A DNA stretch of 64,000 nucleotides. Source: Auanema rhodensis. Its lineage: Eukaryota > Animalia > Nematoda. The stretch lies in NCBI GenBank assembly GCA_964057225.1, contig OZ059899.1:10292001-10356000 (forward strand), in the 5' to 3' direction. The translations under genes and the position numbers were made by a program. The notes beneath the pieces are model-generated. The model was not told the origin of the DNA. It did not search any database and saw only the letters and a program-made list of their open reading frames with translations. This document shows, one piece after another, positions 1 to 64,000 of this stretch (the stretch's first letter is position 1; every line of letters starts with the position of its first letter).

Positions 1-3000
1 AGAAAAATGTAATGTCAGCTCCATAGGTTTTCTCTTAATTTCTCTCATCACAATTGTCTTAGTTTTTTTCTCATAAGAGTTTCTGAAATCTTAGGTGAAC
101 AAGGCCGTATATATTTTTTTCTGGAATTCGAAAGCATTTGGGATGGAAATTATAAAGAAAAGAACTAGTTTTTCCTATTTTAAAACAAACAAAAAAAAAT
201 AAAATGAAAAAGATTGTTAGATATCCAATTTAAACTTATACATTTACTTCGATAAAGAGCCTATTAGTTTGAAATTTTATGTCTTACAGTTCTCCAACAG
301 AACAGACTGATCCTGATTTCTCTATGATTACATAAAACTCTCGTTTGATATAAAAAAGAAGAGGAATAACGTTTCCAGGATGTCAATGATATCGAATCTA
401 GTGATATTGTAGAAAAATGTAATGTCAGCTCCATAGGTTTTCTCTTAATTTCTCTCATCACAATTGTCTTAGTTTTTTTTCTCATAAGAGTTTCTGAAAT
501 CTTAGGTGAACAAGGCCGTATATTTTTTTTTCTGGAATTCGAAAACATTTGGGATGGAAATTAGAAGGAAAAGAACTAGTTTTTCCTACTTTAAAACAAA
601 CAATAAGAAATAAAATAAAAAAGATTGTTAGATATCCAATTTAAACTTATACATTTACTTTGATAAAGAGCCTATTAGTTTGAAATTTTATGTCTTACAG
701 TTCTCCAACAGAACAGACTGATCCTGATTTCTCTATGATTACATAAAACTCTCGTTTGATATAAAAAAGAAGAGGAATAACGTTTCCAGGATGTCAATGA
801 TATCGAATCTAGTGATATTGTAGAAAAATGTAATGTCAGCTCCATAGGTTTTCTCTTAATTTCTCTCATCACAATTGTCTTAGTTTTTTTTCTCATAAGA
901 GTTTCTGAAATCTTAGGTGAACAAGGCCGTATATATTTTTTTCTGGAATTCGAAAGCATTTGGGATGGAAATTAGAAAGAAAAGAACTAGTTTTTCCTAT
1001 TTTTAAACAAACAAAAAAAAATAAAATGAAAAAGATTGTTAGATATCCAATTTAAACTTATACATTTACTTCGATAAAGAGCCTATTAGTTTGAAATTTT
1101 ATGTCTTACAGTTCTCCAACAGAACAGACTGATCCTGATTTCTCTATGATTACATAAAACTCTCGTTTGATATAAAAAAAGAAGAGGAATAACGTTTCCA
1201 GGATGTCAATGATATCGAATCTAGTGATATTGTAGAAAAATGTAATGTCAGCTCCATAGGTTTTCTCTTAATTTCTCTCATCACAATTGTCTTAGTTTTT
1301 TTTCTCATAAGAGTTTCTGAAATCTTAGGTGAACAAGGCCGTATATATTTTTTTCTGGAATTCGAAAACATTTGGGATGGAAATTAGAAGGAAAAGAACT
1401 AGTTTTTCCTACTTTAAAACAAACAATAAGAAATAAAATAAAAAAGATTGTTAGATATCCAATTTAAACTTATACATTTACTTCGATAAAGAGCCTATTA
1501 GTTTGAAATTTTATGTCTTACAGTTCTCCAACAGAACAGACTGATCCTGATTTCTCTATGATTACATAAAACTCTCGTTTGATATAAAAAAGAAGAGGAA
1601 TAACGTTTCCAGGATGTCAATGATATCGAATCTAGTGATATTGTAGAAAAATGTAATGTCAGCTCCATAGGTTTTCTCTTAATTTCTCTCATCACAATTG
1701 TCTTAGTTTTTTTCTCAAAAGAGTTTCTGAAATCTTAGGTGAACAAGGCCGTATATATTTTTTTCTGGAATTCGAAAGCATTTGGGATGGAAATTATAAA
1801 GAAAAGAACTAGTTTTTCCTATTTTAAAACAAACAAAAAAAATAAAATGAAAAAGATTGTTAGATATCCAATTTAAACTTATACATTTACTTCGATAAAG
1901 AGCCTATTAGTTTGAAATTTTATGTCTTACAGTTCTCCAACAGAACAGACTGATCCTGATTTCTCTATGATTACATAAAACTCTCGTTTGATATAAAAAA
2001 GAAGAGGAATAACGTTTCCAGGATGTCAATGATATCGAATCTAGTGATATTGTAGAAAAATGTAATGTCAGCTCCATAGGTTTTCTCTTAATTTCTCTCA
2101 TCACAATTGTCTTAGTTTTTTTTCTCATAAGAGTTTCTGAAATCTTAGGTGAACAAGGCCGTATATTTTTTTTTCTGGAATTCGAAAACATTTGGGATGG
2201 AAATTAAAAGGAAAAGAACTAGTTTTTCCTACTTTAAAACAAACAATAAGAAATAAAATAAAAAAGATTGTTAGATATCTAATTTAAACTTATACATTTA
2301 CTTTGATAAAGAGCCTATTAGTTTGAAATTTTATGTCTTACAGTTCTCCAACAGAACAGACTGATCCTGATTTCTCTATGATTACATAAAACTCTCGTTT
2401 GATATAAAAAAAGAAGAGGAATAACGTTTCCAGGATGTCAATGATATCGAATCTAGTGATATTGTAAAAAAATGTAATGTCAGCTCCATAGGTTTTCTCT
2501 TAATTTCTCTCATCACAATTGTCTTAGTTTTTTTTCTCATAAGAGTTTCTGAAATCTTAGGTGAACAAGGCCGTATATATTTTTTTCTGGAATTCGAAAG
2601 CATTTGGGATGGAAATTAGAAAGAAAAGAACTAGTTTTTCCTACTTTAAAACAAACAATAAGAAATAAAATGAAAAAGATTGTTAGATATCCAATTTAAA
2701 CTTATACATTTACTTCGATAAAGAGCCTATTAGTTTGAAATTTTATGTCTTACAGTTCTCCAACAGAACAGACTGATCCTGATTTCTCTATGATTATATA
2801 AAACTCTCGTTTGATATAAAAAAAGAAGAGGAATAACGTTTCCAGGATGTCAATAATATCGAATCTAGTGATATTGTAGAAAAATGTAATGTCAGCTCCA
2901 TAGGTTTTCTCTTAATTTCTCTCATCACAATTGTCTTAGTTTTTTTCTCATAAGAGTTTCTGAAATCTTAGGTGAACAAGGCAGTATATATTTTTTTCTG

Positions 3001-6000
3001 GAATTCGAAAGCATTTGGGATGGAAATTATAAAGAAAAGAACTAGTTTTTCCTATTTTAAAACAAACAAAAAAAAATAAAATGAAAAAGATTGTTAGATA
3101 TCCAATTTAAACTTATACATTTACTTCGATAAAGAGCCTATTAGTTTGAAATTTTATGTCTTACAGTTCTCCAACAGAACAGACTGATCCTGATTTCTCT
3201 ATGATTACATAAAACTCTCGTTTGATATAAAAAAGAAGAGGAATAACGTTTCCAGGATGTCAATGATATCGAATCTAGTGATATTGTAGAAAAATGTAAT
3301 GTCAGCTCCATAGGTTTTCTCTTAATTTCTCTCATCACAATTGTCTTAGTTTTTTTTCTCATAAGAGTTTCTGAAATCTTAGGTGAACAAGGCCGTATAT
3401 ATTTTTTTCTGGAATTCGAAAACATTTGGGATGGAAATTAGAAGGAAAAGAACTAGTTTTTCCTACTTTAAAACAAACAATAAGAAATAAAATAAAAAAG
3501 ATTGTTAGATATCCAATTTAAACTTATACATTTACTTTGATAAAGAGCCTATTAGTTTGAAATTTTATGTCTTACAGTTCTCCAACAGAACAGACTGATC
3601 CTGATTTCTCTATGATTACATAAAACTCTCGTTTGATATAAAAAAGAAGAGGAATAACGTTTCCAGGATGTCAATGATATCGAATCTAGTGATATTGTAG
3701 AAAAATGTAATGTCAGCTCCATAGGTTTTCTCTTAATTTCTCTCATCACAATTGTCTTAGTTTTTTTTCTCATAAGAGTTTCTGAAATCTTAGGTGAACA
3801 AGGCCGTATATATTTTTTTCTGGAATTCGAAAGCATTTGGGATGGAAATTAGAAAGAAAAGAACTAGTTTTTCCTATTTTAAAACAAACAAAAAAAAATA
3901 AAATGAAAAAGATTGTTAGATATCCAATTTAAACTTATACATTTACTTCGATAAAGAGCCTATTAGTTTGAAATTTTATGTCTTACAGTTCTCCAACAGA
4001 ACAGACTGATCCTGATTTCTCTATGATTACATAAAACTCTCGTTTGATATAAAAAAAGAAGAGGAATAACGTTTCCAGGATGTCAATGATATCGAATCTA
4101 GTGATATTGTAAAAAAATGTAATGTCAGCTCCATAGGTTTTCTCTTAATTTCTCTCATCACAATTGTCTTAGTTTTTTTTCTCATAAGAGTTTCTGAAAT
4201 CTTAGGTGAACAAGGCCGTATATATTTTTTTCTGGAATTCGAAAGCATTTGGGATGGAAATTAGAAAGAAAAGAACTAGTTTTTCCTACTTTAAAACAAA
4301 CAATAAGAAATAAAATGAAAAAGATTGTTAGATATCCAATTTAAACTTATACATTTACTTCGATAAAGAGCCTATTAGTTTGAAATTTTATGTCTTACAG
4401 TTCTCCAACAGAACAGACTGATCCTGATTTCTCTATGATTATATAAAACTCTCGTTTGATATAAAAAAAGAAGAGGAATAACGTTTCCAGGATGTCAATA
4501 ATATCGAATCTAGTGATATTGTAGAAAAATGTAATGTCAGCTCCATAGGTTTTCTCTTAATTTCTCTCATCACAATTGTCTTAGTTTTTTTTCTCATAAG
4601 AGTTTCTGAAATCTTAGGTGAACAAGGCCGTATATATTTTTTTCTGGAATTCGAAAGCATTTGGGATGGAAATTAGAAAGAAAAAAACTAGTTTTTCCTA
4701 CTTTAAAACAAACAATAAGAAATAAAATAAAAAAGATTGTTAGATATCCAATTTAAACTTATACATTTACTTCGATAAAGAGCCTATTAGTTTGAAATTT
4801 TATGTCTTACAGTTCTCCAACAGAACAGACTGATCCTGATTTCTCTATGATTACATAAAACTCTCGTTTGATATAAAAAAAGAAGAGGAATAACGTTTCC
4901 AGGATGTCAATGATATCGAATCTAGTGATATTGTAGAAAAATGTAATGTCAGCTCCATAGGTTTTCTCTTAATTTCTCTCATCACAATTGTCTTAGTTTT
5001 TTTTCTCATAAGAGTTTCTGAAATCTTAGGTGAACAAGGCCGTATATATTTTTTTCTGGAATTCGAAAACATTTGGGATGGAAATTAGAAGGAAAAGAAC
5101 TAGTTTTTCCTACTTTAAAACAAACAATAAGAAATAAAATAAAAAAGATTGTTAGATATCCAATTTAAACTTATACATTTACTTTGATAAAGAGCCTATT
5201 AGTTTAAATTTTATGTCTTACAGTTCTCCAACAGAACAGACTGATCCTGATTTCTCTATGATTACATAAAACTCTCGTTTGATATAAAAAAGAAGAGGAA
5301 TAACGTTTCCAGGATGTCAATGATATCGAATCTAGTGATATTGTAGAAAAATGTAATGTCAGCTCCATAGGTTTTCTCTTAATTTCTCTCATCACAATTG
5401 TCTTAGTTTTTTTTCTCAAAAGAGTTTCTGAAATCTTAGGTGAACAAGGCCGTATATATTTTTTTCTGGAATTCGAAAGCATTTGGGATGGAAATTGGAA
5501 AGAAAAGAACTAGTTTTTCCTACTTTAAAACAAACAATGAGAAATAAAAAAAAAAGATTGTTAGATATCCAATTTAAACTTATACATTTACTTCGATAAA
5601 GAGCCTATTAGTTTGAAGTTTTATGTCTTACAGTTCTCCAACAGAACAGACTGATCCTGATTTCTCTATGATTACATAAAACTCTCGTTTGATATAAAAA
5701 AAAGAAGAGGAATAACGTTTCCAGGATGTCAATGATATCGAATCTAGTGATATTGTAGAAAAATGTAATGTCAGCTCCATAGGTTTTCTCTTAATTTCTC
5801 TCATCACAATTGTCTTAGTTTTTTTCTCATAAGAGTTTCTGAAATCTTAGGTGAACAAGGCCGTATATATTTTTTTCTGGAATTCGAAAGCATTTGGGAT
5901 GGAAATTATAAAGAAAAGAACTAGTTTTTCCTATTTTAAAACAAACAAAAAAAAATAAAATGAAAAAGATTGTTAGATATCCAATTTAAACTTATACATT

Positions 6001-9000
6001 TACTTCGATAAAGAGCCTATTAGTTTGAAATTTTATGTCTTACAGTTCTCCAACAGAACAGACTGATCCTGATTTCTCTATGATTACATAAAACTCTCGT
6101 TTGATATAAAAAAGAAGAGGAATAACGTTTCCAGGATGTCAATGATATCGAATCTAGTGATATTGTAGAAAAATGTAATGTCAGCTCCATAGGTTTTCTC
6201 TTAATTTCTCTCATCACAATTGTCTTAGTTTTTTTTCTCATAAGAGTTTCTGAAATCTTAGGTGAACAAGGCCGTATATTTTTTTTTCTGGAATTCGAAA
6301 ACATTTGGGATGGAAATTAGAAGGAAAAGAACTAGTTTTTCCTACTTTAAAACAAACAATAAGAAATAAAATAAAAAAGATTGTTAGATATCCAATTTAA
6401 ACTTATACATTTACTTTGATAAAGAGCCTATTAGTTTGAAATTTTATGTCTTACAGTTCTCCAACAGAACAGACTGATCCTGATTTCTCTATGATTACAT
6501 AAAACTCTCGTTTGATATAAAAAAGAAGAGGAATAACGTTTCCAGGATGTCAATGATATCGAATCTAGTGATATTGTAGAAAAATGTAATGTCAGCTCCA
6601 TAGGTTTTCTCTTAATTTCTCTCATCACAATTGTCTTAGTTTTTTTTCTCATAAGAGTTTCTGAAATCTTAGGTGAACAAGGCCGTATATATTTTTTTCT
6701 GGAATTCGAAAGCATTTGGGATGGAAATTAGAAAGAAAAGAACTAGTTTTTCCTATTTTAAAACAAACAAAAAAAAATAAAATGAAAAAGATTGTTAGAT
6801 ATCCAATTTAAACTTATACATTTACTTCGATAAAGAGCCTATTAGTTTGAAATTTTATGTCTTACAGTTCTCCAACAGAACAGACTGATCCTGATTTCTC
6901 TATGATTACATAAAACTCTCGTTTGATATAAAAAAAGAAGAGGAATAACGTTTCCAGGATGTCAATGATATCGAATCTAGTGATATTGTAGAAAAATGTA
7001 ATGTCAGCTCCATAGGTTTTCTCTTAATTTCTCTCATCACAATTGTCTTAGTTTTTTTTCTCATAAGAGTTTCTGAAATCTTAGGTGAACAAGGCCGTAT
7101 ATATTTTTTTCTGGAATTCGAAAACATTTGGGATGGAAATTAGAAGGAAAAGAACTAGTTTTTCCTACTTTAAAACAAACAATAAGAAATAAAATAAAAA
7201 AGATTGTTAGATATCCAATTTAAACTTATACATTTACTTCGATAAAGAGCCTATTAGTTTGAAATTTTATGTCTTACAGTTCTCCAACAGAACAGACTGA
7301 TCCTGATTTCTCTATGATTACATAAAACTCTCGTTTGATATAAAAAAGAAGAGGAATAACGTTTCCAGGATGTCAATGATATCGAATCTAGTGATATTGT
7401 AGAAAAATGTAATGTCAGCTCCATAGGTTTTCTCTTAATTTCTCTCATCACAATTGTCTTAGTTTTTTTCTCAAAAGAGTTTCTGAAATCTTAGGTGAAC
7501 AAGGCCGTATATATTTTTTTCTGGAATTCGAAAGCATTTGGGATGGAAATTATAAAGAAAAGAACTAGTTTTTCCTATTTTAAAACAAACAAAAAAAATA
7601 AAATGAAAAAGATTGTTAGATATCCAATTTAAACTTATACATTTACTTCGATAAAGAGCCTATTAGTTTGAAATTTTATGTCTTACAGTTCTCCAACAGA
7701 ACAGACTGATCCTGATTTCTCTATGATTACATAAAACTCTCGTTTGATATAAAAAAGAAGAGGAATAACGTTTCCAGGATGTCAATGATATCGAATCTAG
7801 TGATATTGTAGAAAAATGTAATGTCAGCTCCATAGGTTTTCTCTTAATTTCTCTCATCACAATTGTCTTAGTTTTTTTTCTCATAAGAGTTTCTGAAATC
7901 TTAGGTGAACAAGGCCGTATATTTTTTTTTCTGGAATTCGAAAACATTTGGGATGGAAATTAAAAGGAAAAGAACTAGTTTTTCCTACTTTAAAACAAAC
8001 AATAAGAAATAAAATAAAAAAGATTGTTAGATATCTAATTTAAACTTATACATTTACTTTGATAAAGAGCCTATTAGTTTGAAATTTTATGTCTTACAGT
8101 TCTCCAACAGAACAGACTGATCCTGATTTCTCTATGATTACATAAAACTCTCGTTTGATATAAAAAAAGAAGAGGAATAACGTTTCCAGGATGTCAATGA
8201 TATCGAATCTAGTGATATTGTAAAAAAATGTAATGTCAGCTCCATAGGTTTTCTCTTAATTTCTCTCATCACAATTGTCTTAGTTTTTTTTCTCATAAGA
8301 GTTTCTGAAATCTTAGGTGAACAAGGCCGTATATATTTTTTTCTGGAATTCGAAAGCATTTGGGATGGAAATTAGAAAGAAAAGAACTAGTTTTTCCTAC
8401 TTTAAAACAAACAATAAGAAATAAAATGAAAAAGATTGTTAGATATCCAATTTAAACTTATACATTTACTTCGATAAAGAGCCTATTAGTTTGAAATTTT
8501 ATGTCTTACAGTTCTCCAACAGAACAGACTGATCCTGATTTCTCTATGATTATATAAAACTCTCGTTTGATATAAAAAAAGAAGAGGAATAACGTTTCCA
8601 GGATGTCAATAATATCGAATCTAGTGATATTGTAGAAAAATGTAATGTCAGCTCCATAGGTTTTCTCTTAATTTCTCTCATCACAATTGTCTTAGTTTTT
8701 TTCTCATAAGAGTTTCTGAAATCTTAGGTGAACAAGGCAGTATATATTTTTTTCTGGAATTCGAAAGCATTTGGGATGGAAATTATAAAGAAAAGAACTA
8801 GTTTTTCCTATTTTAAAACAAACAAAAAAAAATAAAATGAAAAAGATTGTTAGATATCCAATTTAAACTTATACATTTACTTCGATAAAGAGCCTATTAG
8901 TTTGAAATTTTATGTCTTACAGTTCTCCAACAGAACAGACTGATCCTGATTTCTCTATGATTACATAAAACTCTCGTTTGATATAAAAAAGAAGAGGAAT

Positions 9001-9150
9001 AACGTTTCCAGGATGTCAATGATATCGAATCTAGTGATATTGTAGAAAAATGTAATGTCAGCTCCATAGGTTTTCTCTTAATTTCTCTCATCACAATTGT
9101 CTTAGTTTTTTTTCTCATAAGAGTTTCTGAAATCTTAGGTGAACAAGGCC
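1..9150. repeat. Higher-order duplication, offset 5756 bp (14 monomers): ~1-3395 repeated at ~5757-9150
   Basis: Rare variants recur at the same offset, e.g. GGCAGTATA at 2983/8739 and GATATCTAAT at ~2280/~8036. The ORF pattern at 264-2603 repeats at 6020-8359. Confidence 0.85.
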
Positions 9151-12100
9151 GTATATTTTTTTTTCTGGAATTCGAAAACATTTGGGATGGAAATTAGAAG
9201 GAAAAGAACTAGTTTTTCCTACTTTAAAACAAACAATAAGAAATAAAATAAAAAAGATTGTTAGATATCCAATTTAAACTTATACATTTACTTTGATAAA
9301 GAGCCTATTAGTTTGAAATTTTATGTCTTACAGTTCTCCAACAGAACAGACTGATCCTGATTTCTCTATGATTAGATAAAACTCTCGTTTGATATAAAAA
9401 AGAAGAGGAATAACGTTTCCAGGATGTCAATGATATCGAATCTAGTGATATTGTAGAAAAATGTAATGTCAGCTCCATAGGTTTTCTCTTAATTTCTCTC
9501 ATCACAATTGTCTTAGTTTTTTTTCTCATAAGAGTTTCTGAAATCTTAGGTGAACAAGGCCGTATATATTTTTTTCTGGAATTCGAAAGCATTTGGGATG
9601 GAAATTAGAAAGAAAAGAACTAGTTTTTCCTATTTTAAAACAAACAAAAAAAAATAAAATGAAAAAGATTGTTAGATATCCAATTTAAACTTATACATTT
9701 ACTTCGATAAAAAGCCTATTAGTTTGAAATTTTATGTCTTACAGTTCTCCAACAGAACAGACTGATCCTGATTTCTCTATGATTACATAAAACTCTCGTT
9801 TGATATAAAAAAGAAGAGGAATAACGTTTCCAGGATGTCAATGATATCGAATCTAGTGATATTGTAGAAAAATGTAATGTCAGCTCCATAGGTTTTCTCT
9901 TAATTTCTCTCATCACAATTGTCTTAGTTTTTTTTCTCATAAGAGTTTCTGAAATCTTAGGTGAACAAGGCCGTATATTTTTTTTTCTGGAATTCGAAAA
10001 CATTTGGGATGGAAATTAGAAGCAAAAGAACTAGTTTTTCCTACTTTAAAACAAACAATAAGAAATAAAATAAAAAAGATTGTTATATATCCAATTTAAA
10101 CTTATACATTTACTTTGATAAAGAGCCTATTAGTTTGAAATTTTATGTCTTACAGTTCTCCAACAGAACAGACTGATCCTGATTTCTCTATGATTACATA
10201 AAACTCTCGTTTGATATAAAAAAGAAGAGGAATAACGTTTCCAGGATGTCAATGATATCTAATCTAGTGATATTGTAGAAAAATGTAATGTCAGCTCCAT
10301 AGGTTTTCTCTTAATTTCTCTCATCACAATTGTCTTAGTTTTTTTTCTCATAAGAGTTTCTGAAATCTTAGGTGAACAAGGCCGTATATATTTTTTTCTG
10401 GAATTCGAAAGCATTTGGGATGGAAATTAGAAAGAAAAGAACTAGTTTTTCCTATTTTAAAACAAACAAAAAAAAATAAAATGAAAAAGATTGTTAGATA
10501 TCCAATTTAAACTTATACATTTACTTCGATAAAGAGCCTATTAGTTTGAAATTTTATGTCTTACAGTTCTCCAACAGAACAGACTGATCCTGATTTCTCT
10601 ATGATTTTATAAAACTCTCGTTTGATATAAAAAAAGAAGAGGAATAACGTTTCCAGGATGTCAATGATATCGAATCTAGTGATATTGTAGAAAAATGTAA
10701 TGTCAGCTCCATAGGTTTTCTCTTAATTTCTCTCATCACAATTGTCTTAGTTTTTTTTCTCATAAGAGTTTCTGAAATCTTAGGTGAACAAGGCCGTATA
10801 TATTTTTTTCTGGAATTCGAAAGCATTTGGGATGGAAATTAGAAAGAAAAAAACTAGTTTTTCCTACTTTAAAACAAACAATAAGAAATAAAATAAAAAA
10901 GATTGTTAGATATCCAATTTAAACTTATACATTTACTTCGATAAAGAGCCTATTAGTTTGAAATTTTATGTCTTACAGTTCTCCAACAGAACAGACTGAT
11001 CCTGATTTCTCTATGATTTTATAAAACTCTCGTTTGATATAAAAAAAGAAGAGGAATAACGTTTCCAGGATGTCAATGATATCGAATCTAGTGATATTGT
11101 AGAAAAATGTAATGTCAGCTCCATAGGTTTTCTCTTAATTTCTCTCATCACAATTGTCTTAGTTTTTTTTCTCATAAGAGTTTCTGAAATCTTAGGTGAA
11201 CAAGGCCGTATATAATTTTTTCTGGAATTCGAAAACATTTGGGATGGAAATTAGAAGGAAAAGAACTAGTTTTTCCTACTTTAAAACAAACAATAAGAAA
11301 TAAAATAAAAAAGATTGTTAGATATCCAATTTAAACTTATACATTTACTTTGATAAAGAGCCTATTAGTTTGAAATTTTTTGTCTTACAGTTCTCCAACA
11401 GAACAGACTGATCCTGATTTCTCTATGATTACATAAAACTCTCGTTTGATATAAAAAAGAAGAGGAATAACGTTTCCAGGATGTCAATGATATCGAATCT
11501 AGTGATATTGTAGAAAAATGTAATGTCAGCTCCATAGGTTTTCTCTTAATTTCTCTCATCACAATTGTCTTAGTTTTTTTTCTCATAAGAGTTTCTGAAA
11601 TCTTAGGTGAACAAGGCCGTATATATTTTTTTCTGGAATTCGAAAGCATTTGGGATGGAAATTATAAAGAAAAGAACTAGTTTTTCCTATTTTAAAACAA
11701 ACAAAAAAAAATAAAATGAAAAAGATTGTTAGATATCCAATTTAAACTTATACATTTACTTCGATAAAGAGCCTATTAGTTTGAAATTTTATGTCTTACA
11801 GTTCTCCAACAGAACAGACTGATCCTGATTTCTCTATGATTACCTAAAACTCTCGTTTGATATAAAAAAAGAAGAGGAATAACGTTTCCAGGATGTCAAT
11901 GATATCGAATCTAGTGATATTGTAAAAAAATGTAATGTCAGCTCCATAGGTTTTCTCTTAATTTCTCTCATCACAATTGTCTTAGTTTTTTTTCTCATAA
12001 GAGTTTCTGAAATCTTAGGTGAACAAGGCCGTATATATTTTTTTCTGGAAATCGAAAGCATTTGGGATGGAAATTAGAAAGAAAAGAACTAGTTTTTCCT

Positions 12101-12849
12101 ATTTTAAAACAAACAAAAAAAAATAAAATAAAAAAGATTGTTAGATATCCAATTTAAACTCATACATTTACTTTGATAAAGAGCCTATTAGTTTGAAATT
12201 TTATGTCTTACAGTTCTCCAACAGAACAGACTGATCCTGATTTCTCTATGATTACATAAAACTCTCGTTTGATATAAAAAAGAAGAGGAATAACGTTTCC
12301 AGGATGTCAATGATATCGAATCTAGTGATATTGTAGAAAAATGTAATGTCAGCTCCATAGGTTTTCTCTTAATTTCTCTCATCACAATTGTCTTAGTTTT
12401 TTTTCTCATAAGAGTTTCTGAAATCTTAGGTGAACAAGGCCGTATATATTTTTTTCTGGAATTCGAAAGCATTTGGGATGGAAATTATAAAGAAAAGAAC
12501 TAGTTTTTCCTATTTTAAAACAAACAAAAAAAAATAAAATGAAAAAGATTGTTAGATATCCAATTTAAACTTATACATTTACTTCGATAAAGAGCCTATT
12601 AGTTTGAAATTTTATGTCTTACAGTTCTCCAACAGAACAGACTGATCCTGATTTCTCTATGATTACATAAAACTCTCGTTTGATATTATAAAAGAAGAGG
12701 AATAACGTTTCCAGGATGTCAATGATATCGAATCTAGTGATATTGTAGAAAAATGTAATGTCAGCTCCATAGGTTTTCTCTTAATTTCTCTCATCACAAT
12801 AGTCTTAGTTTTTTTTCTCATAAGAGTTTCTGAAATCCTAGTTGAACAA

Positions 12850-19895: not shown

Positions 19896-22075
19896 TAAAT
19901 TTTTTTCATTTGACTTGTCATTTACAAAAATCAAATTTATCTTCTTCAACGATTATTTTTGCAATGTGTCATAAAAATTTCACAGTTGAACAAAACGTTT
20001 TTTAAGAAATTTTTTTGTTGTCAACATATATATTTTCCTGGAATTCGAAAGCATTTGGGATGGAAATTAGAAAGAAAAGAACTAGTTTTTCCTATTTTAA
20101 AACAAACAAAAAAAAATAAAATGAAAAAGATTGTTAGATATCCAATTTAAACTTATACATTTACTTCGATAAAGAGCCTATTAGTTTGAAATTTTATGTC
20201 TTACAGTTCTCCAACAGAACAGACTGATCCTGATTTCTCTATGATTACATAAAACTCTCGTTTGATATGAAAAAAGAAGAGGAATAACGTTTCCAGGATG
20301 TCAATGATATCGAATCTAGTGATATTGTAAAAAAATGTAATGTCAGCTCCATAGGTTTTCTCTTAATTTCTCTCATCACAATTGTCTTAGTTTTTTTTCT
20401 CATAAGAGTTTCTGAAATCTTAGGTGAACAAGGCCGTATATATTTTTTTCTGGAATTCGAAAGCATTTGGGATGGAAATTAGAAAGAAAAGAACCAGTTT
20501 TTCCTACTTTAAAACAAACAATAAGAAATAAAATAAAAAAGATTGTTAGATATCCAATTTAAACTTATACATTTACTTCGATAAAGAGCCAGTTTGAAAT
20601 TTTATGTCTTACAGTTCTCCAACAGAACAGACTGATCCTGATTTCTCTATGATTACATAAAATTCTCGTTTGATATAAAAAAAGAAGAGGAATAACGTTT
20701 CCAGGATGTCAATGATATCGAATCTAGTGATATTGTAAAAAAATGTAATGTCAGCTCCATAGGTTTTCTCTTAATTTCTCTCATCACAATTGTCTTAGTT
20801 TTTTTTCTCATAAGAGTTTCTGAAATCTTAGGTGAACAAGGCCGTATATATTTTTTTCTGGAATTCGAAAGCATTTGGGATGGAAATTAGAAAGAAAAGA
20901 ACTAGTTTTTCCTACTTTAAAACAAACAATAAGAAATAAAATAAAAAAGATTGTTAGATATCCAATTTAAACTTATACATTTACTTCGATAAAGAGCCTA
21001 TTAGTTTGAAATTTTATGTCTTACAGTTCTCCAACAGAACAGACTGATCCTGATTTCTCTATGATTATATAAAACTCTCGTTTGATATAAAAAAAGAAGA
21101 GGAATAACGTTTCCAGGATGTCAATGATATCGAATCTAGTGATATTGTAGAAAAATGTAATGTCAGCTCCATAGGTTTTCTCTTAATTTCTCTCATCACA
21201 ATTGTCTTAGTTTTTTTTCTCATAAGAGTTTCTGAAATCTTAGGTGAACAAGGCCGTATATATTTTTTTCTGGAATTCGAAAGCATTTGGGATGGAAATT
21301 AGAAAGAAAAGAACTAGTTTTTCCTACTTTAAAACAAACAATAAGAAATAAAATAAAAAAGATTGTTAGATATCCAATTTAAACTTATACATTTACTTCG
21401 ATAAAGAGCCTATTAGTTTGAAATTTTATGTCTTACAGTTCTCCAACAGAACAGACTGATCCTGATTTCTCTATGATTATATAAAACTCTCGTTTGATAT
21501 AAAAAAAGAAGAGGAATAACGTTTCCAGGATGTCAATGATATCGAATCTAGTGATATTGTAGAAAAATGTAATGTCAGCTCCATAGGTTTTCTCTTAATT
21601 TCTCTCATCACAATTGTCTTAGTTTTTTTTCTCATAAGAGTTTCTGAAATCTTAGGTGAACAAGGCCGTATATATTTTTTTCTGGAATTCGAAAGCATTT
21701 GGGATGGAAATTAGAAAGAAAAGAACTAGTTTTTCCTACTTTAAAACAAACAATAAGAAATAAAATAAAAAAGATTGTTAGATATCCAATTTAAACTTAT
21801 ACATTTATTTCGATAAAGAGCCTATTAGTTTGAAATTTTATGTCTTACAGTTCTCCAACAGAACAGACTGATCCTGATTTCTCTATGATTACATAAAACT
21901 CTCGTTTGATATAAAAAAAGAAGAGGAATAACGTTTCCAGGATGTCAATGATATCGAATCTAGTGATATTGTAGAAAAATGTAATGTCAGCTCCATAGGT
22001 TTTCTCTTAATTTCTCTCATCACAATTGTCTTAGTTTTTTTTCTCATAAGAGTTTCTGAAATCTTAGGTGAACAA

Positions 22076-22148
22076 GGCCGCGTGGCGCAATGGATAACGC
22101 GTCTGCCTACGGAGCAGAAGATTGTAGGTTCGAATCCTGCCGTGGTCG
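22076..22148 (+). tRNA. tRNA-Arg(ACG), copy 4
   Basis: Identical 73-nt gene plus T7. Confidence 0.97.
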
Positions 22149-34100: not shown

Positions 34101-34163
34101 TCTCTCATCACAATTGTCTTAGTTTTTTTTCTCATAAGAGTTTCTGAAATCTTAGGTGAACAA

Positions 34164-41741: not shown

Positions 41742-41814
41742 GGCCGCGTGGCGCAATGGATAACGCGTCTGCCTACGGAGCAGAAGATTGTAGGTTCGAA
41801 TCCTGCCGTGGTCG
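41742..41814 (+). tRNA. tRNA-Arg(ACG), copy 16
   Basis: Identical 73-nt gene plus T7. Confidence 0.97.
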
Positions 41815-42762: not shown

Positions 42763-42835
42763 GGCCGCGTGGCGCAATGGATAACGCGTCTGCCTACGGA
42801 GCAGAAGATTGTAGGTTCGAATCCTGCCGTGGTCG
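42763..42835 (+). tRNA. tRNA-Arg(ACG), copy 17
   Basis: Identical 73-nt gene plus T7. Confidence 0.97.
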
Positions 42836-43783: not shown

Positions 43784-43856
43784 GGCCGCGTGGCGCAATG
43801 GATAACGCGTCTGCCTACGGAGCAGAAGATTGTAGGTTCGAATCCTGCCGTGGTCG
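43784..43856 (+). tRNA. tRNA-Arg(ACG), copy 18
   Basis: Identical 73-nt gene plus T7. Confidence 0.97.
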
Positions 43857-45216
43857 TAAATTTTTTTCATTTCACTTGTCATTTACAAAAATTAAATTTA
43901 TCTTCTTCAACGATTATTTTTGCAATGTGTCATAAAAATTTCACAGTTGAACAAAAAGTTTTTTGAGAATTTTTTTTGTTGTCAACATATATATTTTCCT
44001 GGAATTCGAAAGCATTTGGGATGGAAATTAGAAAGAAAAGAACTAGTTTTTCCTATTTTAAAACAAACAAAAAAAAATAAAATGAAAAAGATTGTTAGAT
44101 ATCCAATTTAAACTTATACATTTACTTCGATAAAAAGCCTATTAGTTTGAAATTTTATGTCTTACAGTTCTCCAACAGAACAGACTGATCCTGATTTCTC
44201 TATGATTACATAAAACTCTCGTTTGATATACAAAAAGGAGAGGAATAACGTGTCCAGGATATCAATGATATCGAATCTAGTGATATTGTAGAAAAATGTA
44301 ATGTCAGCTCCATAGGTTTTCTCTTAATTTCTCTCATCACAATTGTCTTAGTTTTTTTTCTCATAAGAGTTTCTGAAATCTTAGGTGAACAAGGCCGTAT
44401 ATATTTTTTTCTGGAATTCGAAAGCATTTGGGATGGAAATTAGAAAGAAAAGAACTAGTTTTTCCTACTTTAAAACAAACAATAAGAAATAAAATAAAAA
44501 AGATTGTTAGATATCCAATTTAAACTTATACATTTACTTCGATAAAGAGCCTATTAGTTTGAAATTTTATGTCTTACAGTTCTCCAACAGAACAGACTGA
44601 TCCTGATTTCTCTATGATTATATAAAACTCTCGTTTGATATAAAAAAAGAAGAGGAATAACGTTTCCAGGATGTCAATGATATCGAATCTAGTGATATTG
44701 TAGAAAAATGTAATGTCAGCTCCATAGGTTTTCTCTTAATTTCTCTCATCACAATTGTCTTAGTTTTTTTTCTCATAAGAGTTTCTGAAATCTTAGGTGA
44801 ACAAGGCCGTATATATTTTTTTCTGGAATTCGAAAGCATTTGGGATGGAAATTAGAAAGAAAAGAACTAGTTTTTCCTACTTTAAAACAAACAATAAGAA
44901 ATAAAATAAAAAAGATTGTTAGATATCCAATTTAAACTTATACATTTACTTCGATAAAGAGCCTATTAGTTTGAAATTTTATGTCTTACAGTTCTCCAAC
45001 AGAACAGACTGATCCTGATTTCTCTATGATTACATAAAACTCTCGTTTGATATAAAAAAAGAAGAGGAATAACGTTTCCAGGATGTCAATGATATCGAAT
45101 CTAGTGATATTGTAGAAAAATGTAATGTCAGCTCCATAGGTTTTCTCTTAATTTCTCTCATCACAATTGTCTTAGTTTTTTTTCTCATAAGAGTTTCTGA
45201 AATCTTAGGTGAACAA

Positions 45217-45289
45217 GGCCGCGTGGCGCAATGGATAACGCGTCTGCCTACGGAGCAGAAGATTGTAGGTTCGAATCCTGCCGTGGTCG
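45217..45289 (+). tRNA. tRNA-Arg(ACG), copy 19
   Basis: Identical 73-nt gene plus T7. Confidence 0.97.
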
Positions 45290-46649
45290 TAAATTTTTTT
45301 CATTTCACTTGTCATTTACAAAAATTAAATTTATCTTCTTCAACGATTATTTTTGCAATGTGTCATAAAAATTTCACAGTTGAACAAAAAGTTTTTTGAG
45401 AATTTTTTTTGTTGTCAACATATATATTTTCCTGGAATTCGAAAGCATTTGGGATGGAAATTAGAAAGAAAAGAACTAGTTTTTCCTATTTTAAAACAAA
45501 CAAAAAAAAATAAAATGAAAAAGATTGTTAGATATCCAATTTAAACTTATACATTTACTTCGATAAAGAGCCTATTAGTTTGAAATTTTATGTCTTACAG
45601 TTCTCCAACAGAACAGACTGATCCTGATTTCTCTATGATTACATAAAATTCTCGTTTGATATAAAAAAAGAAGAGGAATAACGTTTCCAGGATGTCAATG
45701 ATATCGAATCTAGTGATATTGTAAAAAAATGTAATGTCAGCTCCATAGGTTTTCTCTTAATTTCTCTCATCACAATTGTCTTAGTTTTTTTTCTCATAAG
45801 AGTTTCTGAAATCTTAGGTGAACAAGGCCGTATCTATTTTTTTCTGGAATTCGAAAGCATTTGGAATGGATATTAGAAGGAAAAGAACTAGTTTTTCCTA
45901 CTTTAAAACAAACAATAAGAAATAAAATAAAAAAGATTGTTAGATATCCAATTTAAACTTATACATTTACTTTGATAAAGAGCCTATTAGTTTGAAATTT
46001 TATGTCTTACAGTTCTCCAACAGAACAGACTGATCCTGATTTCTCTATGATTACATAAAACTCTCGTTTGATATGAAAAAAGAAGAGGAATAACGTTTCC
46101 AGGATGTCAATGATATCGAATCTAGTGATATTGTAGAAAAATGTAATGTCAGCTCCATAGGTTTTCTTTTAATTTCTCTCATCACAATTGTCTTAGTTTT
46201 TTTTCTCATAAGAGTTTCTGAAATCTTAGGTGAACAAGGCCGTATATATTTTTTTCTGGAATTCGAAAGCATTTGGGATGGAAATTAGAAAGAAAAGAAC
46301 TAGTTTTTCCTACTTTAAAACAAACAATAAGAAATAAAATAAAAAAGATTGTTAGATATCCAATTTAAACTTATACATTTACTTCGATAAAGAGCCTATT
46401 AGTTTGAAATTTTATGTCTTACAGTTCTCCAACAGAACAGACTGATCCTGATTTCTCTATGATTATATAAAACTCTCGTTTGATATAAAAAAAGAAGAGG
46501 AATAACGTTTCCAGGATGTCAATGATATCGAATCTAGTGATATTGTAGAAAAATGTAATGTCAGCTCCATAGGTTTTCTCTTAATTTCTCTCATCACAAT
46601 TGTCTTAGTTTTTTTTCTCATAAGAGTTTCTGAAATCTTAGGTGAACAA

Positions 46650-46722
46650 GGCCGCGTGGCGCAATGGATAACGCGTCTGCCTACGGAGCAGAAGATTGTA
46701 GGTTCGAATACTGCCGTGGTCG
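46650..46722 (+). tRNA. tRNA-Arg(ACG), copy 20, C61A variant (probable pseudogene)
   Basis: GGTTCGAATAC instead of GGTTCGAATCC (A at 46710). This breaks the invariant G53-C61 pair and the B box. Confidence 0.88.
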
Positions 46723-47670
46723 TAAATTTTTTTCATTTCACTTGTCATTTACAAAAATTAAATTTATCTTCTTCAACGATTATTTTTGCAATGTGTCATA
46801 AAAATTTCACAGTTGAACAAAAAGTTTTTTGAGAATTTTTTTTGTTGTCAACATATATATTTTCCTGGAATTCGAAAGCATTTGGGATGGAAATTAGAAA
46901 GAAAAGAACTAGTTTTTCCTATTTTAAAACAAACAAAAAAAAATAAAATGAAAAAGATTGTTAGATATCCAATTTAAACTTATACATTTACTTCGATAAA
47001 GAGCCTATTAGTTTGAAATTTTATGTCTTACAGTTCTCCAACAGAACAGACTGATCCTGATTTCTCTATGATTACATGAAACTCTCGTTTGATATACAAA
47101 AAGGAGAGGAATAACGTGTCCAGGATATCAATGATATCGAATCTAGTGATATTGTAGAAAAATGTAATGTCAGCTCCATAGGTTTTCTCTTAATTTCTCT
47201 CATCACAATTGTCTTAGTTTTTTTTCTCATAAGAGTTTCTGAAATCTTAGGTGAACAAGGCCGTATCTATTTTTTTCTGGAATTCGAAAGCATTTGGGAT
47301 GGATATTAGAAGGAAAAGAACTAGTTTTTCCTACTTTAAAACAAACAATAAGAAATAAAATAAAAAAGATTGTTAGATATCCAATTTAAACTTATACATT
47401 TACTTCGATAAAGAGCCTATTAGTTTGAAATTTTATGTCTTACAGTTCTCCAACAGAACAGACTGATCCTGATTTCTCTATGATTACATAAAACTCTCGT
47501 TTGATATAAAAAAAGAAGAGGAATAACGTTTCCAGGATGTCAATGATATCGAATCTAGTGATATTGTAGAAAAATGTAATGTCAGCTCCATAGGTTTTCT
47601 CTTAATTTCTCTCATCACAATTGTCTTAGTTTTTTTTCTCATAAGAGTTTCTGAAATCTTAGGTGAACAA

Positions 47671-47743
47671 GGCCGCGTGGCGCAATGGATAACGCGTCTG
47701 CCTACGGAGCAGAAGATTGTAGGTTCGAATCCTGCCGTGGTCG
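47671..47743 (+). tRNA. tRNA-Arg(ACG), copy 21
   Basis: Identical 73-nt gene plus T7. Confidence 0.97.
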
Positions 47744-48691
47744 TAAATTTTTTTCATTTCACTTGTCATTTACAAAAATTAAATTTATCTTCTTCAACGA
47801 TTATTTTTGCAATGTGTCATAAAAATTTCACAGTTGAACAAAAAGTTTTTTGAGAATTTTTTTTGTTGTCAACATATATATTTTCCTGGAATTCGAAAGC
47901 ATTTGGGATGGAAATTAGAAAGAAAAGAACTAGTTTTTCCTACTTTAAAACAAACAATAAGAAATAAAATAAAAAAGATTGTTAGATATCCAATTTAAAC
48001 TTATACATTTACTTCGATAAAGAGCCTATTAGTTTGAAATTTTATGTCTTACAGTTCTCCAACAGAACAGACTGATCCTGATTTCTCTATGATTATATAA
48101 AACTCTCGTTTGATATAAAAAAAGAAGAGGAATAACGTTTCCAGGATGTCAATGATATCGAATCTAGTGATATTGTAGAAAAATGTAATGTCAGCTCCAT
48201 AGGTTTTCTCTTAATTTCTCTCATCACAATTGTCTTAGTTTTTTTTCTCATAAGAGTTTCTGAAATCTTAGGTGAACAAGGCCGTATATATTTTTTTCTG
48301 GAATTCGAAAGCATTTGGGATGGAAATTAGAAAGAAAAGAACTAGTTTTTCCTACTTTAAAACAAACAATAAGAAATAAAATAAAAAAGATTGTTAGATA
48401 TCCAATTTAAACTTATACATTTACTTCGATAAAGAGCCTATTAGTTTGAAATTTTATGTCTTACAGTTCTCCAACAGAACAGACTGATCCTGATTTCTCT
48501 ATGATTACATAAAACTCTCGTTTGATATAAAAAAAGAAGAGGAATAACGTTTCCAGGATGTCAATGATATCGAATCTAGTGATATTGTAGAAAAATGTAA
48601 TGTCAGCTCCATAGGTTTTCTCTTAATTTCTCTCATCACAATTGTCTTAGTTTTTTTTCTCATAAGAGTTTCTGAAATCTTAGGTGAACAA

Positions 48692-48764
48692 GGCCGCGTG
48701 GCGCAATGGATAACGCGTCTGCCTACGGAGCAGAAGATTGTAGGTTCGAATCCTGCCGTGGTCG
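48692..48764 (+). tRNA. tRNA-Arg(ACG), copy 22
   Basis: Identical 73-nt gene plus T7. Confidence 0.97.
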
Positions 48765-49712
48765 TAAATTTTTTTCATTTCACTTGTCATTTACAAAAAT
48801 TAAATTTATCTTCTTCAACGATTATTTTTGCAATGTGTCATAAAAATTTCACAGTTGAACAAAAAGTTTTTTGAGAATTTTTTTTGTTGTCAACATATAT
48901 ATTTTCCTGGAATTCGAAAGCATTTGGGATGGAAATTAGAAAGAAAAGAACTAGTTTTTCCTATTTTAAAACAAACAAAAAAAAATAAAATGAAAAAGAT
49001 TGTTAGATATCCAATTTAAACTTATACATTTACTTCGATAAAAAGCCTATTAGTTTGAAATTTTATGTCTTACAGTTCTCCAACAGAACAGACTGATCCT
49101 GATTTCTCTATGATTACATAAAACTCTCGTTTGATATACAAAAAGGAGAGGAATAACGTGTCCAGGATATCAATGATATCGAATCTAGTGATATTGTAGA
49201 AAAATGTAATGTCAGCTCCATAGGTTTTCTCTTAATTTCTCTCATCACAATTGTCTTAGTTTTTTTTCTCATAAGAGTTTCTGAAATCTTAGGTGAACAA
49301 GGCCGTATATATTTTTTTCTGGAATTCGAAAGCATTTGGGATGGAAATTAGAAAGAAAAGAACTAGTTTTTCCTACTTTAAAACAAACAATAAGAAATAA
49401 AATAAAAAAGATTGTTAGATATCCAATTTAAACTTATACATTTACTTCGATAAAGAGCCTATTAGTTTGAAATTTTATGTCTTACAGTTCTCCAACAGAA
49501 CAGACTGATCCTGATTTCTCTATGATTATATAAAACTCTCGTTTGATATAAAAAAAGAAGAGGAATAACGTTTCCAGGATGTCAATGATATCGAATCTAG
49601 TGATATTGTAGAAAAATGTAATGTCAGCTCCATAGGTTTTCTCTTAATTTCTCTCATCACAATTGTCTTAGTTTTTTTTCTCATAAGAGTTTCTGAAATC
49701 TTAGGTGAACAA

Positions 49713-49785
49713 GGCCGCGTGGCGCAATGGATAACGCGTCTGCCTACGGAGCAGAAGATTGTAGGTTCGAATCCTGCCGTGGTCG
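49713..49785 (+). tRNA. tRNA-Arg(ACG), copy 23
   Basis: Identical 73-nt gene plus T7. Confidence 0.97.
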
Positions 49786-51143
49786 TAAATTTTTTTCATT
49801 TCACTTGTCATTTACAAAAATTAAATTTATCTTCTTCAACGATTATTTTTGCAATGTGTCATAAAAATTTCACAGTTGAACAAAAAGTTTTTTGAGAATT
49901 TTTTTTGTTGTCAACATATATATTTTCCTGGAATTCGAAAGCATTTGGGATGGAAATTAGAAAGAAAAGAACTAGTTTTTCCTATTTTAAAACAAACAAA
50001 AAAAAATAAAATGAAAAAGATTGTTAGATATCCAATTTAAACTTATACATTTACTTCGATAAAGAGCCTATTAGTTTGAAATTTTATGTCTTACAGTTCT
50101 CCAACAGAACAGACTGATCCTGATTTCTCTATGATTACATAAAACTCTCGTTTGATATACAAAAAGGAGAGGAATAACGTGTCCAGGATATCAATGATAT
50201 CGAATCTAGTGATATTGTAGAAAAATGTAATGTCAGCTCCATAGGTTTTCTCTTAATTTCTCTCATCATAATTGTCTTAGTTTTTTTTCTCATAAGAGTT
50301 TCTGAAATCTTAGGTGAACAAGGCCGTATCTATTTTTTTCTGGAATTCGAAAGCATTTGGGATGGATATTAGAAGGAAAAGAACTAGTTTTTCCTACTTT
50401 AAAACAAACAATAAGAAATAAAATAAAAAAGATTGTTAGATATCCAATTTAAACTTATACATTTACTTTGATAAAGAGCCTATTAGTTTGAAATTTTATG
50501 TCTTACAGTTCTCCAACAGAACAGACTGATCCTGATTTCTCTATGATTACATAAAACTCTCGTTTGATATGAAAAAAGAAGAGGAATAACGTTTCCAGGA
50601 TGTCAATGATATCGAATCTAGTGATATTGTAGAAAAATGTAATGTCAGCTCCATAGGTTTTCTCTTAATTTCTCTCATCACAATTGTCTTAGTTTTTTTT
50701 CTCATAAGAGTTTCTGAAATCTTAGGTGAACAAGGCCGTATCTATTTTTTTCTGGAATTCGAAAGCATTTGGGATGGATATTAGAAGGAAAAGAACTAGT
50801 TTTTCCTACTTTAAAACATACAATAAGAAATAAAATAAAAAAGATTGTTAGATATCCAATTTAAACTTATACATTTACTTCGATAAAGAGCCTATTAGTT
50901 TGAAATTTTATGTCTTACAGTTCTCCAACAGAACAGACTGATCCTGATTTCTCTATGATTACATAAAACTCTCGTTTGATATACAAAAAGGAGAGGAATA
51001 ACGTTTCCAGGATATCAATGATATCGAATCTAGTGATATTGTAGAAAAATGTAATGTCAGCTCCATAGTTTTTCTCTAAATTTCTCTCATCACAATAGTC
51101 TTATTTTTTTTTCATAAGAGTTTCTGAAATCTTAGTTGAACAA

Positions 51144-51216
51144 GGCCGCGTGGCGCGATGGATAACGCGTCTGCCTACGAAGCAGAAGATTGTAGGTTCG
51201 AATCCTGCCGTGGTCG
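51144..51216 (+). tRNA. tRNA-Arg(ACG), copy 24, A14G + G37A variant (probable pseudogene)
   Basis: TGGCGCGATGG (G at 51157, loss of invariant A14 in the A box) and anticodon loop CTACGAA (A at 51180). Confidence 0.88.
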
Positions 51217-52647: not shown

Positions 52648-55049
52648 TAAATTTTTTTCATTTGACTTGTCATTTACAAAAATCAAATTTATCTTCTTCA
52701 ACGATTATTTTTGCAATGTGTCATAAAAATTTCACAGTTGAACAAAACGTTTTTTAAGAATTTTTTTTGTTGTCAACATATATATTTTCCTGGAATTCGA
52801 AAGCATTTGGGATGGAAATTAGAAAGAAAAGAACTAGTTTTTCCTATTTTAAAACAAACAAAAAAAAATAAAATGAAAAAGATTGTTAGATATCCAATTT
52901 AAACTTATACATTTACTTCGATAAAGAGCCTATTAGTTTGAAATTTTATGTCTTACAGTTCTCCAACAGAACAGACTGATCCTGATTTCTCTATGATTAC
53001 ATAAAACTCTCGTTTGATATAAAAAAAGAAGAGGAATAACGTTTCCAGGATGTCAATGATATCGAATCTAGTGATATTGTAAAAAAATGTAATGTCAGCT
53101 CCATAGGTTTTCTCTTAATTTCTCTCATCACAATTGTCTTAGTTTTTTTTCTCATAAGAGTTTCTGAAATCTTAGGTGAACAAGGCCGTATATATATTTT
53201 CCTGGATTTCGAAAGCATTTGGGATGGAAATTAGAAAGAAAAGAACTAGTTTTTCCTACTTTAAAACAAACAAAAAAAAAATAAAATGAAAAAGATTGTT
53301 AGATGTCCAATTTAAACTTATACATTTACTTCGATAAAGAGCCTATTAGTTTGAAATTTTATGTCTTACAGTTCTCCAACAGAACAGACTGATCCTGATT
53401 TCTCTATGATTACATAAAACTCTCGTTTGATATAAAAAAAGAAGAGGAATAACGTTTCCAGGATGTCAATGATATCGAATCTAGTGATATTGTAGAAAAA
53501 TGTAATGTCAGCTCCATAGGTTTTCTCTTAATTTCTCTCATCACAATTGTCTTAGTTTTTTTTCTCATAAGAGTTTCTAAAATCTTAGGTGAACAAGGCC
53601 GTATATATTTTTTTCTGGAATTCGAAAGCATTTGGGATGGAAATTAGAAAGAAAAGAACTAGTTTTTCCTACTTTAAAACAAACAATAAGAAATAAAATA
53701 AAAAAGATTGTTAGATATCCAATTTAAACTTATACATTTACTTCGATAAAGAGCCTATTAGTTTGAAATTTTATGTCTTACAGTTCTCCAACAGAACAGA
53801 CTGATCCTGATTTCTCTATGATTATATAAAACTCTCGTTTGATATAAAAAAAGAAGAGGAATAACGTTTCCAGGATGTCAATGATATCGAATCTAGTGAT
53901 ATTGTAGAAAAATGTAATGTCAGCTCCATAGGTTTTCTCTTAATTTCTCTCATCACAATTGTCTTAGTTTTTTTTCTCATAAGAGTTTCTGAAATCTTAG
54001 GTGAACAAGGCCGTATATATTTTTTTCTGGAATTCGAAAGCATTTGGGATGGAAATTAGAAAGAAAAGAACTAGTTTTTCCTACTTTAAAACAAACAATA
54101 AGAAATAAAATAAAAAAGATTGTTAGATATCCAATTTAAACTTATACATTTACTTCGATAAAGAGCCTATTAGTTTGAAATTTTATGTCTTACAGTTCTC
54201 CAACAGAACAGACTGATCCTGATTTCTCTATGATTACATAAAACTCTCGTTTGATATAAAAAAAGAAGAGGAATAACGTTTCCAGGATGTCAATGATATC
54301 GAATCTAGTGATATTGTAGAAAAATGTAATGTCAGCTCCATAGGTTTTCTCTTAATTTCTCTCATCACAATTGTCTTAGTTTTTTTTCTCATAAGAGTTT
54401 CTGAAATCTTAGGTGAACAAGGCCGTATATATTTTTTTCTGGAATTCGAAAGCATTTGGGATGGAAATTAGAAAGAAAAGAACTAGTTTTTCCTATTTTA
54501 AAACAAACAAAAAAAAATAAAATGAAAAAGATTATTAGATATCCAATTTAAACTTATACATTTACTTCGATAAAGAGCCTATTAGTTTGAAATTTTATGT
54601 CTTACAGTTCTCCAACAGAACAGACTGATCCTGATTTCTCTATGATTACATAAAACTCTCGTTTGATATAAAAAAAGAAGAGGAATAACGTTTCCAGGAT
54701 GTCAATGATATCGAATCTAGTGATATTGTAAAAAAATGTAATGTCAGCTCCATAGGTTTTCTCTTAATTTCTCTCATCACAATTGTCTTAGTTTTTTTTC
54801 TCATAAGAGTTTCTGAAATCTTAGGTGAACAAGGCCGTATATATTTTTTTCTGGAATTCGAAAGCATTTGGGATGGAAATTAGAAAGAAAAGAACTAGTT
54901 TTTCCTACTTTAAAACAAACAATAAGAAATAAAATGAAAAAGATTGTTAGATATCCGATTTAAACTTATACATTTACTTCGATAAAGAGCCTATTAGTTT
55001 GAAATTTTATGTCTTACAGTTCTCCAACAGAACAGACTGATCCTGATTT

Positions 55050-62508: not shown

Positions 62509-64000
62509 TAAATTTTTTTCATTTGACTTGTCATTTACAAAAATCAAATTTATCTTCTTCAACGATTATTTTTGCAATGTGTCATAAAAATTTCACAGTT
62601 GAACAAAACGTTTTTTAAGAATTTTTTTTGTTGTCAACATATATATTTTCCTGGAATTCGAAAGCATTTGGGATGGAAATTAGAAAGAAAAGAACTAGTT
62701 TTTCCTATTTTAAAACAAACAAAAAAAATAAAATGAAAAAGATTGTTAGATATCCAATTTAAACTTATACATTTACTTCGATAAAGAGCCTATTAGTTTG
62801 AAATTTTATGTCTTACAGTTCTCCAACAGAACAGACTGATCCTGATTTCTCTATGATTACATAAAATTCTCGTTTGATATAAAAAAAGAAGAGGAATAAC
62901 GTTTCCAGGATGTCAATGATATCGAATCTAGTGATATTGTAAAAAAATGTAATGTCAGCTCCATAGGTTTTCTCTTAATTTCTCTCATCACAATTGTCTT
63001 AGTTTTTTTTCTCATAAGAGTTTCTGAAATCTTAGGTGAACAAGGCCGTATATATTTTTTTCTGGAATTCAAAAGCATTTGGGATGGAAATTAGAAAGAA
63101 AAGAACTAGTTTTTCCTACTTTAAAACGAACAATAAGAAATAAAATAAAAAAGATTGTTAGATATCCAATTTAAACTTATACATTTACTTCGATAAAGAG
63201 CCTATTAGTTTGAAATTTTATGTCTTACAGTTCTCCAACAGAACAGACTGATCCTGATTTCTCTATGATTACATAAAACTCTCGTTTGATATAAAAAAAG
63301 AAGAGGAATAACGTTTCCAGGATGTCAATGATATCGAATCTAGTGATATTGTAGAAAAATGTAATGTCAGCTCCATAGGTTTTCTCTTAATTTCTCTCAT
63401 CACAATTGTCTTAGTTTTTTTTCTCATAAGAGTTTCTGAAATCTTAGGTGAACAAGGCCGTATATATTTTTTTCTGGAATTCGAAAGCATTTGGGATGGA
63501 TATTAGAAGGAAAAGAACTAGTTTTTCCTACTTTAAAACAAACAATAAGAAATAAAATAAAAAAGATTGTTAGATATCCAATTTAAACTTATACATTTAC
63601 TTTGATAAAGAGCCTATTAGTTTGAAATTTTATGTCTTACAGTTCTCCAACAGAACAGACTGATCCTGATTTCTCTATGATTATATAAAACTCTCGTTTG
63701 ATATAAAAAAAGAAGAGAAATAACGTTTCCAGGATGTCAATGATATCGAATCTAGTGATATTGTAAAAAAATGTAATGTCAGCTCCATAAGTTTTCTCTT
63801 AATTTCTCTCATCACAATTGTCTTAGTTTTTTTTCTCATAAGAGTTTCTGAAATCTTAGGTGAACAAGGCCGTATATATTTTTTTCTGGAATTCGAAAGC
63901 ATTTGGGATGGAAATTAGAAAGAAAAGAACTAGTTTTTCCTACTTTAAAACAAACAATAAGAAATAAAATAAAAAAGATTGTTAGATATCCAATTTAAAC

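Follow-up and report, generated by a model that had tools for sequence, protein, structure and literature searches.

A tandem array of tRNA-Arg(ACG) gene units interspersed with gene-less units that probably derive from them by a single deletion

The window (the whole 64-kb stretch of DNA analysed here) is occupied by a mixed tandem array of two unit types (Table 1). Splitting at a backbone anchor resolved 141 complete head-to-tail units that abut directly, with nothing else in between across the whole window, and these comprise 114 short (S) units of 408–413 bp (mode, 412 bp) and 27 long (L) units of 606–610 bp (mode, 609 bp). The resulting S:L ratio of 4.2:1 agrees with an earlier note on this DNA, which had put tRNA-deleted monomers at about four for each gene-bearing one. 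Only 27 of the 141 units carry a tRNA gene, so that the array differs from a plain tandem tRNA array, in which every unit does. Between successive L units lie 1–16 S units, and the density of L rises from zero in the first 12.7 kb to a peak of 6 in 16 units around 40–48 kb (range within the window, 0–38%); GC content is 28–30% and flat throughout. MluI was expected to be specific to L and is (one site in each of the 27 L units, zero in S). The companion expectation, one EcoRI site per monomer, holds for 133 of the 141 units and fails for eight S units that lack the site, so an EcoRI ladder of 412 and 609 bp would include some multimers. Neither a telomere hexamer nor the piRNA upstream motif is present in the window. 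Open reading frames of 92–107 aa on the minus strand, at 264–548 and in 23 similar places, are confined to some backbone haplotypes and were taken as chance.

Table 1. Coordinates of the array, its representative units and individual variants in the window.
Feature	Position	Strand	Description
Mixed tandem array	1..64000	+	114 S and 27 L complete units, head to tail; continues beyond both window ends
Pure S (gene-less) stretch	1..12723	+	30 complete units; contains a 9-unit block recurring 14 units later
L monomer, representative	21950..22558	+	609 bp
tRNA-Arg(ACG) gene	22076..22148	+	73 nt; cloverleaf, A and B boxes; 23/27 copies identical
Segment absent from S	22081..22279	+	199 bp; tRNA nt 6–73, terminator, 131-bp trailer; joint 22080 to 22280
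T7 run	22153..22159	+	4 nt past tRNA; L only; Pol III terminator-like
S monomer, representative	22559..22970	+	412 bp
Residual tRNA nt 1–5 at S junction	22685..22689	+	
Variant tRNA copy	starts at 25350		G5A
L-rich zone	34000..50200	+	Recently duplicated multi-unit blocks
Variant tRNA copy	starts at 46650		C61A
tRNA copy with two private changes	51144..51216	+	A14G and G37A
Variant tRNA copy	starts at 52575		G52C
Atypical S	53058..53470	+	Shared left breakpoint, L-type 3' flank, one extra TA; junction type also in X4, X7

Each L unit contains exactly one tRNA-Arg(ACG) gene (27 by ARAGORN; Rfam tRNA match, 58.3 bits), and the genes of the array are structurally intact, with an A box, a B box, a cloverleaf and a T7 run, which we take, from established knowledge of Pol III, to be a terminator-like signal. 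An Rfam match to Y RNA reached 21 bits, well below the threshold of 38, and was set aside as chance. Variation within the gene amounts to five changes spread over 4 of the 27 copies, every one a singleton. The copy with two private changes is probably impaired, and in three of the four variant copies the promoter boxes or the T stem are likely to be harmed, as judged by established tRNA structure.

The S unit lacks a single segment that begins at nucleotide 6 of the tRNA. Its left breakpoint is common to all 114 S units, and the five tRNA nucleotides left in front of it read GGCCG in 112 and GGCAG in 2, so that both the stub and the shared breakpoint are as first described (the latter for the left side). 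The earlier note had S equal to L minus one 197-bp segment, of which the single missing segment stands and the length does not: it is better given as 199 bp, followed by a later gain of 2 nt by slippage and one C>T change. Immediately 3' of the junction, the T4-CC of L corresponds in 113 of the 114 S units to a lengthened T run followed by a single C (T7-C), and the simplest reading of the window's S form would be a 199-bp deletion plus two extra nucleotides and one C>T. A clean 199-bp skip from 22080 to 22280 is found in public runs X1 and X4, with a loose end in X5, and its existence makes a two-step deletion via the likeness of the tRNA 5' and 3' ends unneeded. A 198-nt skip with one T between occurs in runs X4 and X7 and matches the atypical window unit at 53058–53470, which rules this unit out as a one-off recombinant and marks it as one of an S subfamily. 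There are thus at least three S junction subtypes with a single left breakpoint, as would be expected from one event and subsequent slippage in the TA/T tract. Neither the S/L alignment nor the public-run joints show microhomology at the deletion joint.

L units, S units and the S junction are all present in public runs of three independent studies (P1, P2, and P3), and the junction is thus not an assembly artefact. That the mixture of L and S arose from collapsed or mis-joined repeats is hardly credible: long near-identical repeats are indeed hard to assemble, and the order of units is beyond the reach of the short public contigs, but besides the recurrence in three studies, the S units of the window fall into 77 different sequences and the L units into 19, and their haplotypes are coherent. 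The repeat is best represented in two sets of runs filed under one species label: the first, of 2023, has chimeric, Hi-C-like joints carrying GATC, and the second, of 2019, contains mate-pair adapters. This combination fits the Hi-C and older short-read data behind the germline genome of Auanema rhodense (bioRxiv 10.64898/2026.08.27.747507). Run X1 yielded many further joints that contain GATC and were discarded as likely products of Hi-C ligation. Trailer depth bins are several-fold below backbone bins, in tables that we did not take as copy numbers. A second, rare gene-less joint, from 21915/6 to 22297 with 17 other letters between, was seen in runs X4 and X5; it would yield a unit of ∼246 bp, which is absent from this window, and it suggests that loss of the gene from L recurs.

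We favour deletion over insertion as the direction of change, and consider it quite likely that one ancestral deletion in a unit of a tRNA-Arg array gave rise to S, which was then amplified by ordinary array turnover. This proposal of the earlier note is supported by the shared left breakpoint, by the five-nucleotide stub, and by diverged L-type contigs: among the contigs listed, L-type sequences ∼11–12% diverged from the window's L already join gene, trailer and backbone, reading through from the trailer, or from the 3' end of the tRNA, to the backbone downstream (run X5 record 21, 26 mismatches and 3 gaps over 223 letters; run X4 record 12, 15 over 136). In the window, by comparison, L and S backbones differ by 1.3–2.5%, which argues that the gene-bearing layout is old, with the proviso that diverged S forms could exist beyond the contigs listed. 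Because recombination homogenises the backbone, the low divergence between L and S does not date the deletion. Outside the window, runs X4, X5 and X7 contain a diverged L subfamily (∼10–12% in trailer and backbone) over 22133–22355.

The main alternative, in which the satellite came first and the tRNA gene and trailer were inserted once into a monomer, either by homology at a five-nucleotide match or as a SINE-like copy, with L amplified afterwards, would likewise yield a single shared junction. It would, however, need the backbone to supply the exact 5' end of the acceptor stem at the insertion point, and the five-nucleotide stub is found anywhere, on either strand, in only 1.1% of dinucleotide-shuffled backbones. 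Neither a target-site duplication nor an A-rich (poly(A)) tail was found around the extra segment in the L/S alignment or the public-run joints, which counts against insertion of a tRNA-derived SINE. The trailer, for its part, is unrelated to the backbone: it shares a 10-mer with the 5' flank, but this is not above shuffles (p 0.7–0.9), and the trailer was therefore not accepted as a degenerate copy of that flank. A satellite that came first would suit the fourfold excess of S and its pure stretches, as well as the 3'-side diversity of S, which is no lower than that of L (pi 0.021 vs 0.018), but not the existence of the diverged L-type contigs. We regard insertion as improbable, and the earlier judgement that it is the less parsimonious course is supported by the ∼1% chance of the stub and the lack of a target-site duplication at the joints.

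In the runs labelled as organisms B and C the variants are those of the other runs, and the event cannot be polarised from them. Run X5 (organism B, study P1) contains the array with matching variants in similar proportions, together with tRNA-Arg genes that lie in unique flanks. It may come from the same species filed under a different label, from a sample of mixed origin, or from a very close relative. Loose ends leading into foreign flanks occur, among the rows listed, at the ends of the tRNA itself, where they represent other tRNA-Arg loci, and not at the end of the trailer. A metagenome scan with the L 5' junction gave no match.

The earlier note had also proposed to decompose the array and build a phylogeny of its monomers; the decomposition gave the units described above, and the backbone tree turned out to be uninformative. 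Recombination deprives such a tree of meaning (L as one clade was rejected only marginally, p-AU 0.0495, and the tree was dropped as evidence), and we therefore used four-gamete counts instead. All four gametes (backbone variant by cassette presence) are found at 18 backbone sites, and six L units have a backbone identical to that of some S unit; L and S thus exchange sequence. On the 3' side, linkage to the cassette falls from an r2 of 0.96 within 13 bp to 0.2 at 70–100 bp and is low beyond, and a stretch of 57 bp 3' of the cassette (22290–22347 and equivalents) is invariant in 27 of 27 L units, as compared with at least five variable sites in S subsamples. These data suggest that exchange may be suppressed beside the 199-bp heterology. 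On the 5' side, the S units at 18877–19286 and 61902–62311 carry, up to 13 bp from the junction, a flank haplotype otherwise found in five L units. Whole blocks have also been copied: a nine-unit SSLSLSLSS block is repeated with one difference and a seven-unit SLSLSLS block with four, and such repetition of mixed blocks indicates recent growth by multi-unit duplication. Two L units are never neighbours (0 observed vs 5 expected, p 0.002; 0.004–0.05 with duplicated contexts collapsed), and the shortest spacing from gene to gene is 1021 bp. We infer a mechanical cause, in that an L–L pair needs a crossover within 410 bp flanked on both sides by heterology.

The same absence of L–L neighbours could be read as a sign that the mixture, once deletion had produced it, has been selected, with L transcribed in germline or early embryonic cells, or bound by TFIIIC, and S serving as spacers that set gene density; in another version the block would be a landmark specific to its chromosome, for example a pairing site, and a recent Auanema preprint speculates on pairing-centre roles of chromosome-specific repeat blocks (bioRxiv 10.64898/2026.08.27.747507). 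We consider selection of this kind, both versions taken together, unlikely. The tRNA has five singleton and no shared variants, as compared with 8 singleton and 23 shared among 31 sites in the rest of L (Fisher p 0.003), and its five private changes exceed the 1.7 expected at the backbone rate (p 0.03), but the lack of shared tRNA sites is not significant per bp alone (p 0.10), and these tests are post hoc, with very small numbers and non-independent units. Similarly, variants at ≥5% in four public runs number 0 inside the tRNA and 14 in the 131-bp trailer, with tRNA variant shares in these runs diluted by other tRNA-Arg loci. Nematode tRNA genes are reported to combine high, transcription-linked mutation with purifying selection (PMC13010820), and the singleton-only pattern resembles that combination of mutation and purging; we take it as a weak hint of selection, since conservation of the tRNA may also be ancestral or reflect conversion by other tRNA-Arg copies. 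Backbone or trailer sequence occurs in none of the public RNA runs, which carry either nothing or conserved tRNA words whose source locus cannot be assigned, and L density varies widely within the window; both weigh against a selected mixture, as does the mechanical account of L–L absence, provided that intervals flanked by the 199-bp heterology are avoided in exchange. Conversely, pure drift without extra assumptions leaves the absence of L–L pairs and the singleton-only tRNA mutations unexplained.

The earlier note did not recognise such a mixed array as a described system, and in this it needs correction, because the same architecture has been published for 5S genes in the flour beetle Tribolium freemani. 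There, 5S genes alternate with 1–10 gene-less monomers of TfSat, a satellite from their own spacer (TfSat/NTS similarity, ∼73%); the long monomer retains 26 bp of 5S, and the sibling species T. castaneum has a plain array (PMC11202950). The two systems agree in having gene-less monomers homologous to the parent spacer, a variable number of them between genes, and a gene remnant in the monomer, which in our case is present in all S units. They differ in that the parent gene here is tRNA-Arg(ACG) and not 5S rRNA, in that the stub is the 5'-terminal 5 nt of the gene as against 26 bp, and in that the gene-less unit comprises the entire 410-bp flank, formed by one sharp deletion and 98–99% identical to its parent; the window array is, moreover, without retrotransposons. 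By its sequence the array would be a tRNA variant of the T. freemani type, outside strict membership. Satellites derived from the intergenic spacer of rDNA are known from potato, tomato, Vicia, Nicotiana and Phaseolus, and 5S-derived ones from Hoplias and Plantago (PMC12692304); PcP190 of frogs is likewise derived from 5S (PMC4877019). These too were born of a multigene RNA array, but rDNA-derived satellites are mostly apart from, and well diverged from, their parent, and PcP190 retains the gene-like part, whereas here the spacer was retained. In the open-access literature searched, which leaves most subscription papers outside, no satellite derived from the spacer of a tRNA gene was found, and to that extent the claim of novelty stands.

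As far as the accessible parts of the reports go, tandem tRNA arrays in Nippostrongylus brasiliensis (tRNA-Trp and tRNA-Ser; PMC5765664), in Entamoeba (PMC2652664), and at human 1q23.3 (a tRNA VNTR; PMC4041453) resemble the present array in their head-to-tail genes, species-specific spacers and homogenisation by concerted evolution. All their units, however, carry one or more genes, and a majority of gene-deleted units is not reported in those parts for any of the three. The germline genome of Auanema rhodense measures 181 Mb, of which 61% is eliminated from the soma; it contains multi-megabase repeat blocks with units of 167–504 bp and 19,554 tRNA genes, and the eliminated DNA includes tRNA arrays (bioRxiv 10.64898/2026.08.27.747507). 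The S unit of ∼412 bp falls within the range of these germline-restricted repeats; A. rhodense is the probable host of the array, which is probably germline-restricted as well. The accessible text of the preprint keeps satellites apart from tRNA arrays as a class of their own and makes no mention of 412/609-bp units or of a tRNA-derived satellite, and the Auanema FISH probes AT-1, XT-1, XT-2 and XR-1 do not match the repeat at up to six edits on either strand.

The likeliest history would begin with a tandem array of tRNA-Arg(ACG) genes in 609-bp units. One 199-bp deletion starting at tRNA nucleotide 6 would have taken away the internal promoter with its A and B boxes, along with terminator and trailer, producing a promoter-less unit of 410 bp, and unequal exchange, gene conversion and block duplication would have spread this unit among intact ones. 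With tRNA-Arg copies in great excess, shorter and unconstrained units could gain ground by neutral drive, and if the DNA is germline-restricted, weak selection on repeat load may also favour the gain of S. Slippage at the junction would then account for local subtypes, including the 412-bp form of the window. It is also conceivable, albeit doubtful, that this is a megabase-scale germline-restricted tRNA-Arg array whose gene-less derivative has been co-opted, in a block that is discarded in the soma. If so, the remaining genes would be transcribed in the germline and purged of mutations there, and S would separate the genes, tuning the dose of tRNA or forming a TFIIIC-anchored chromosome landmark.

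No new mechanism is revealed by these findings; they provide a clear instance of satellite DNA arising from an array of genes. Parent and derivative can here be compared base by base for a satellite whose source is a tRNA gene array, an origin missing from a 2025 review of satellite origins, in which the word tRNA is absent (PMC12692304). Because a single sharply bounded 199-bp marker tells L from S, the array can serve as a natural assay of unequal exchange and conversion at a heterology, and also of whether repeats in regions of programmed elimination drift freely, as the Auanema preprint proposes. Lastly, it serves as a warning that in such genomes tRNA gene counts and satellite families are not independent classes.
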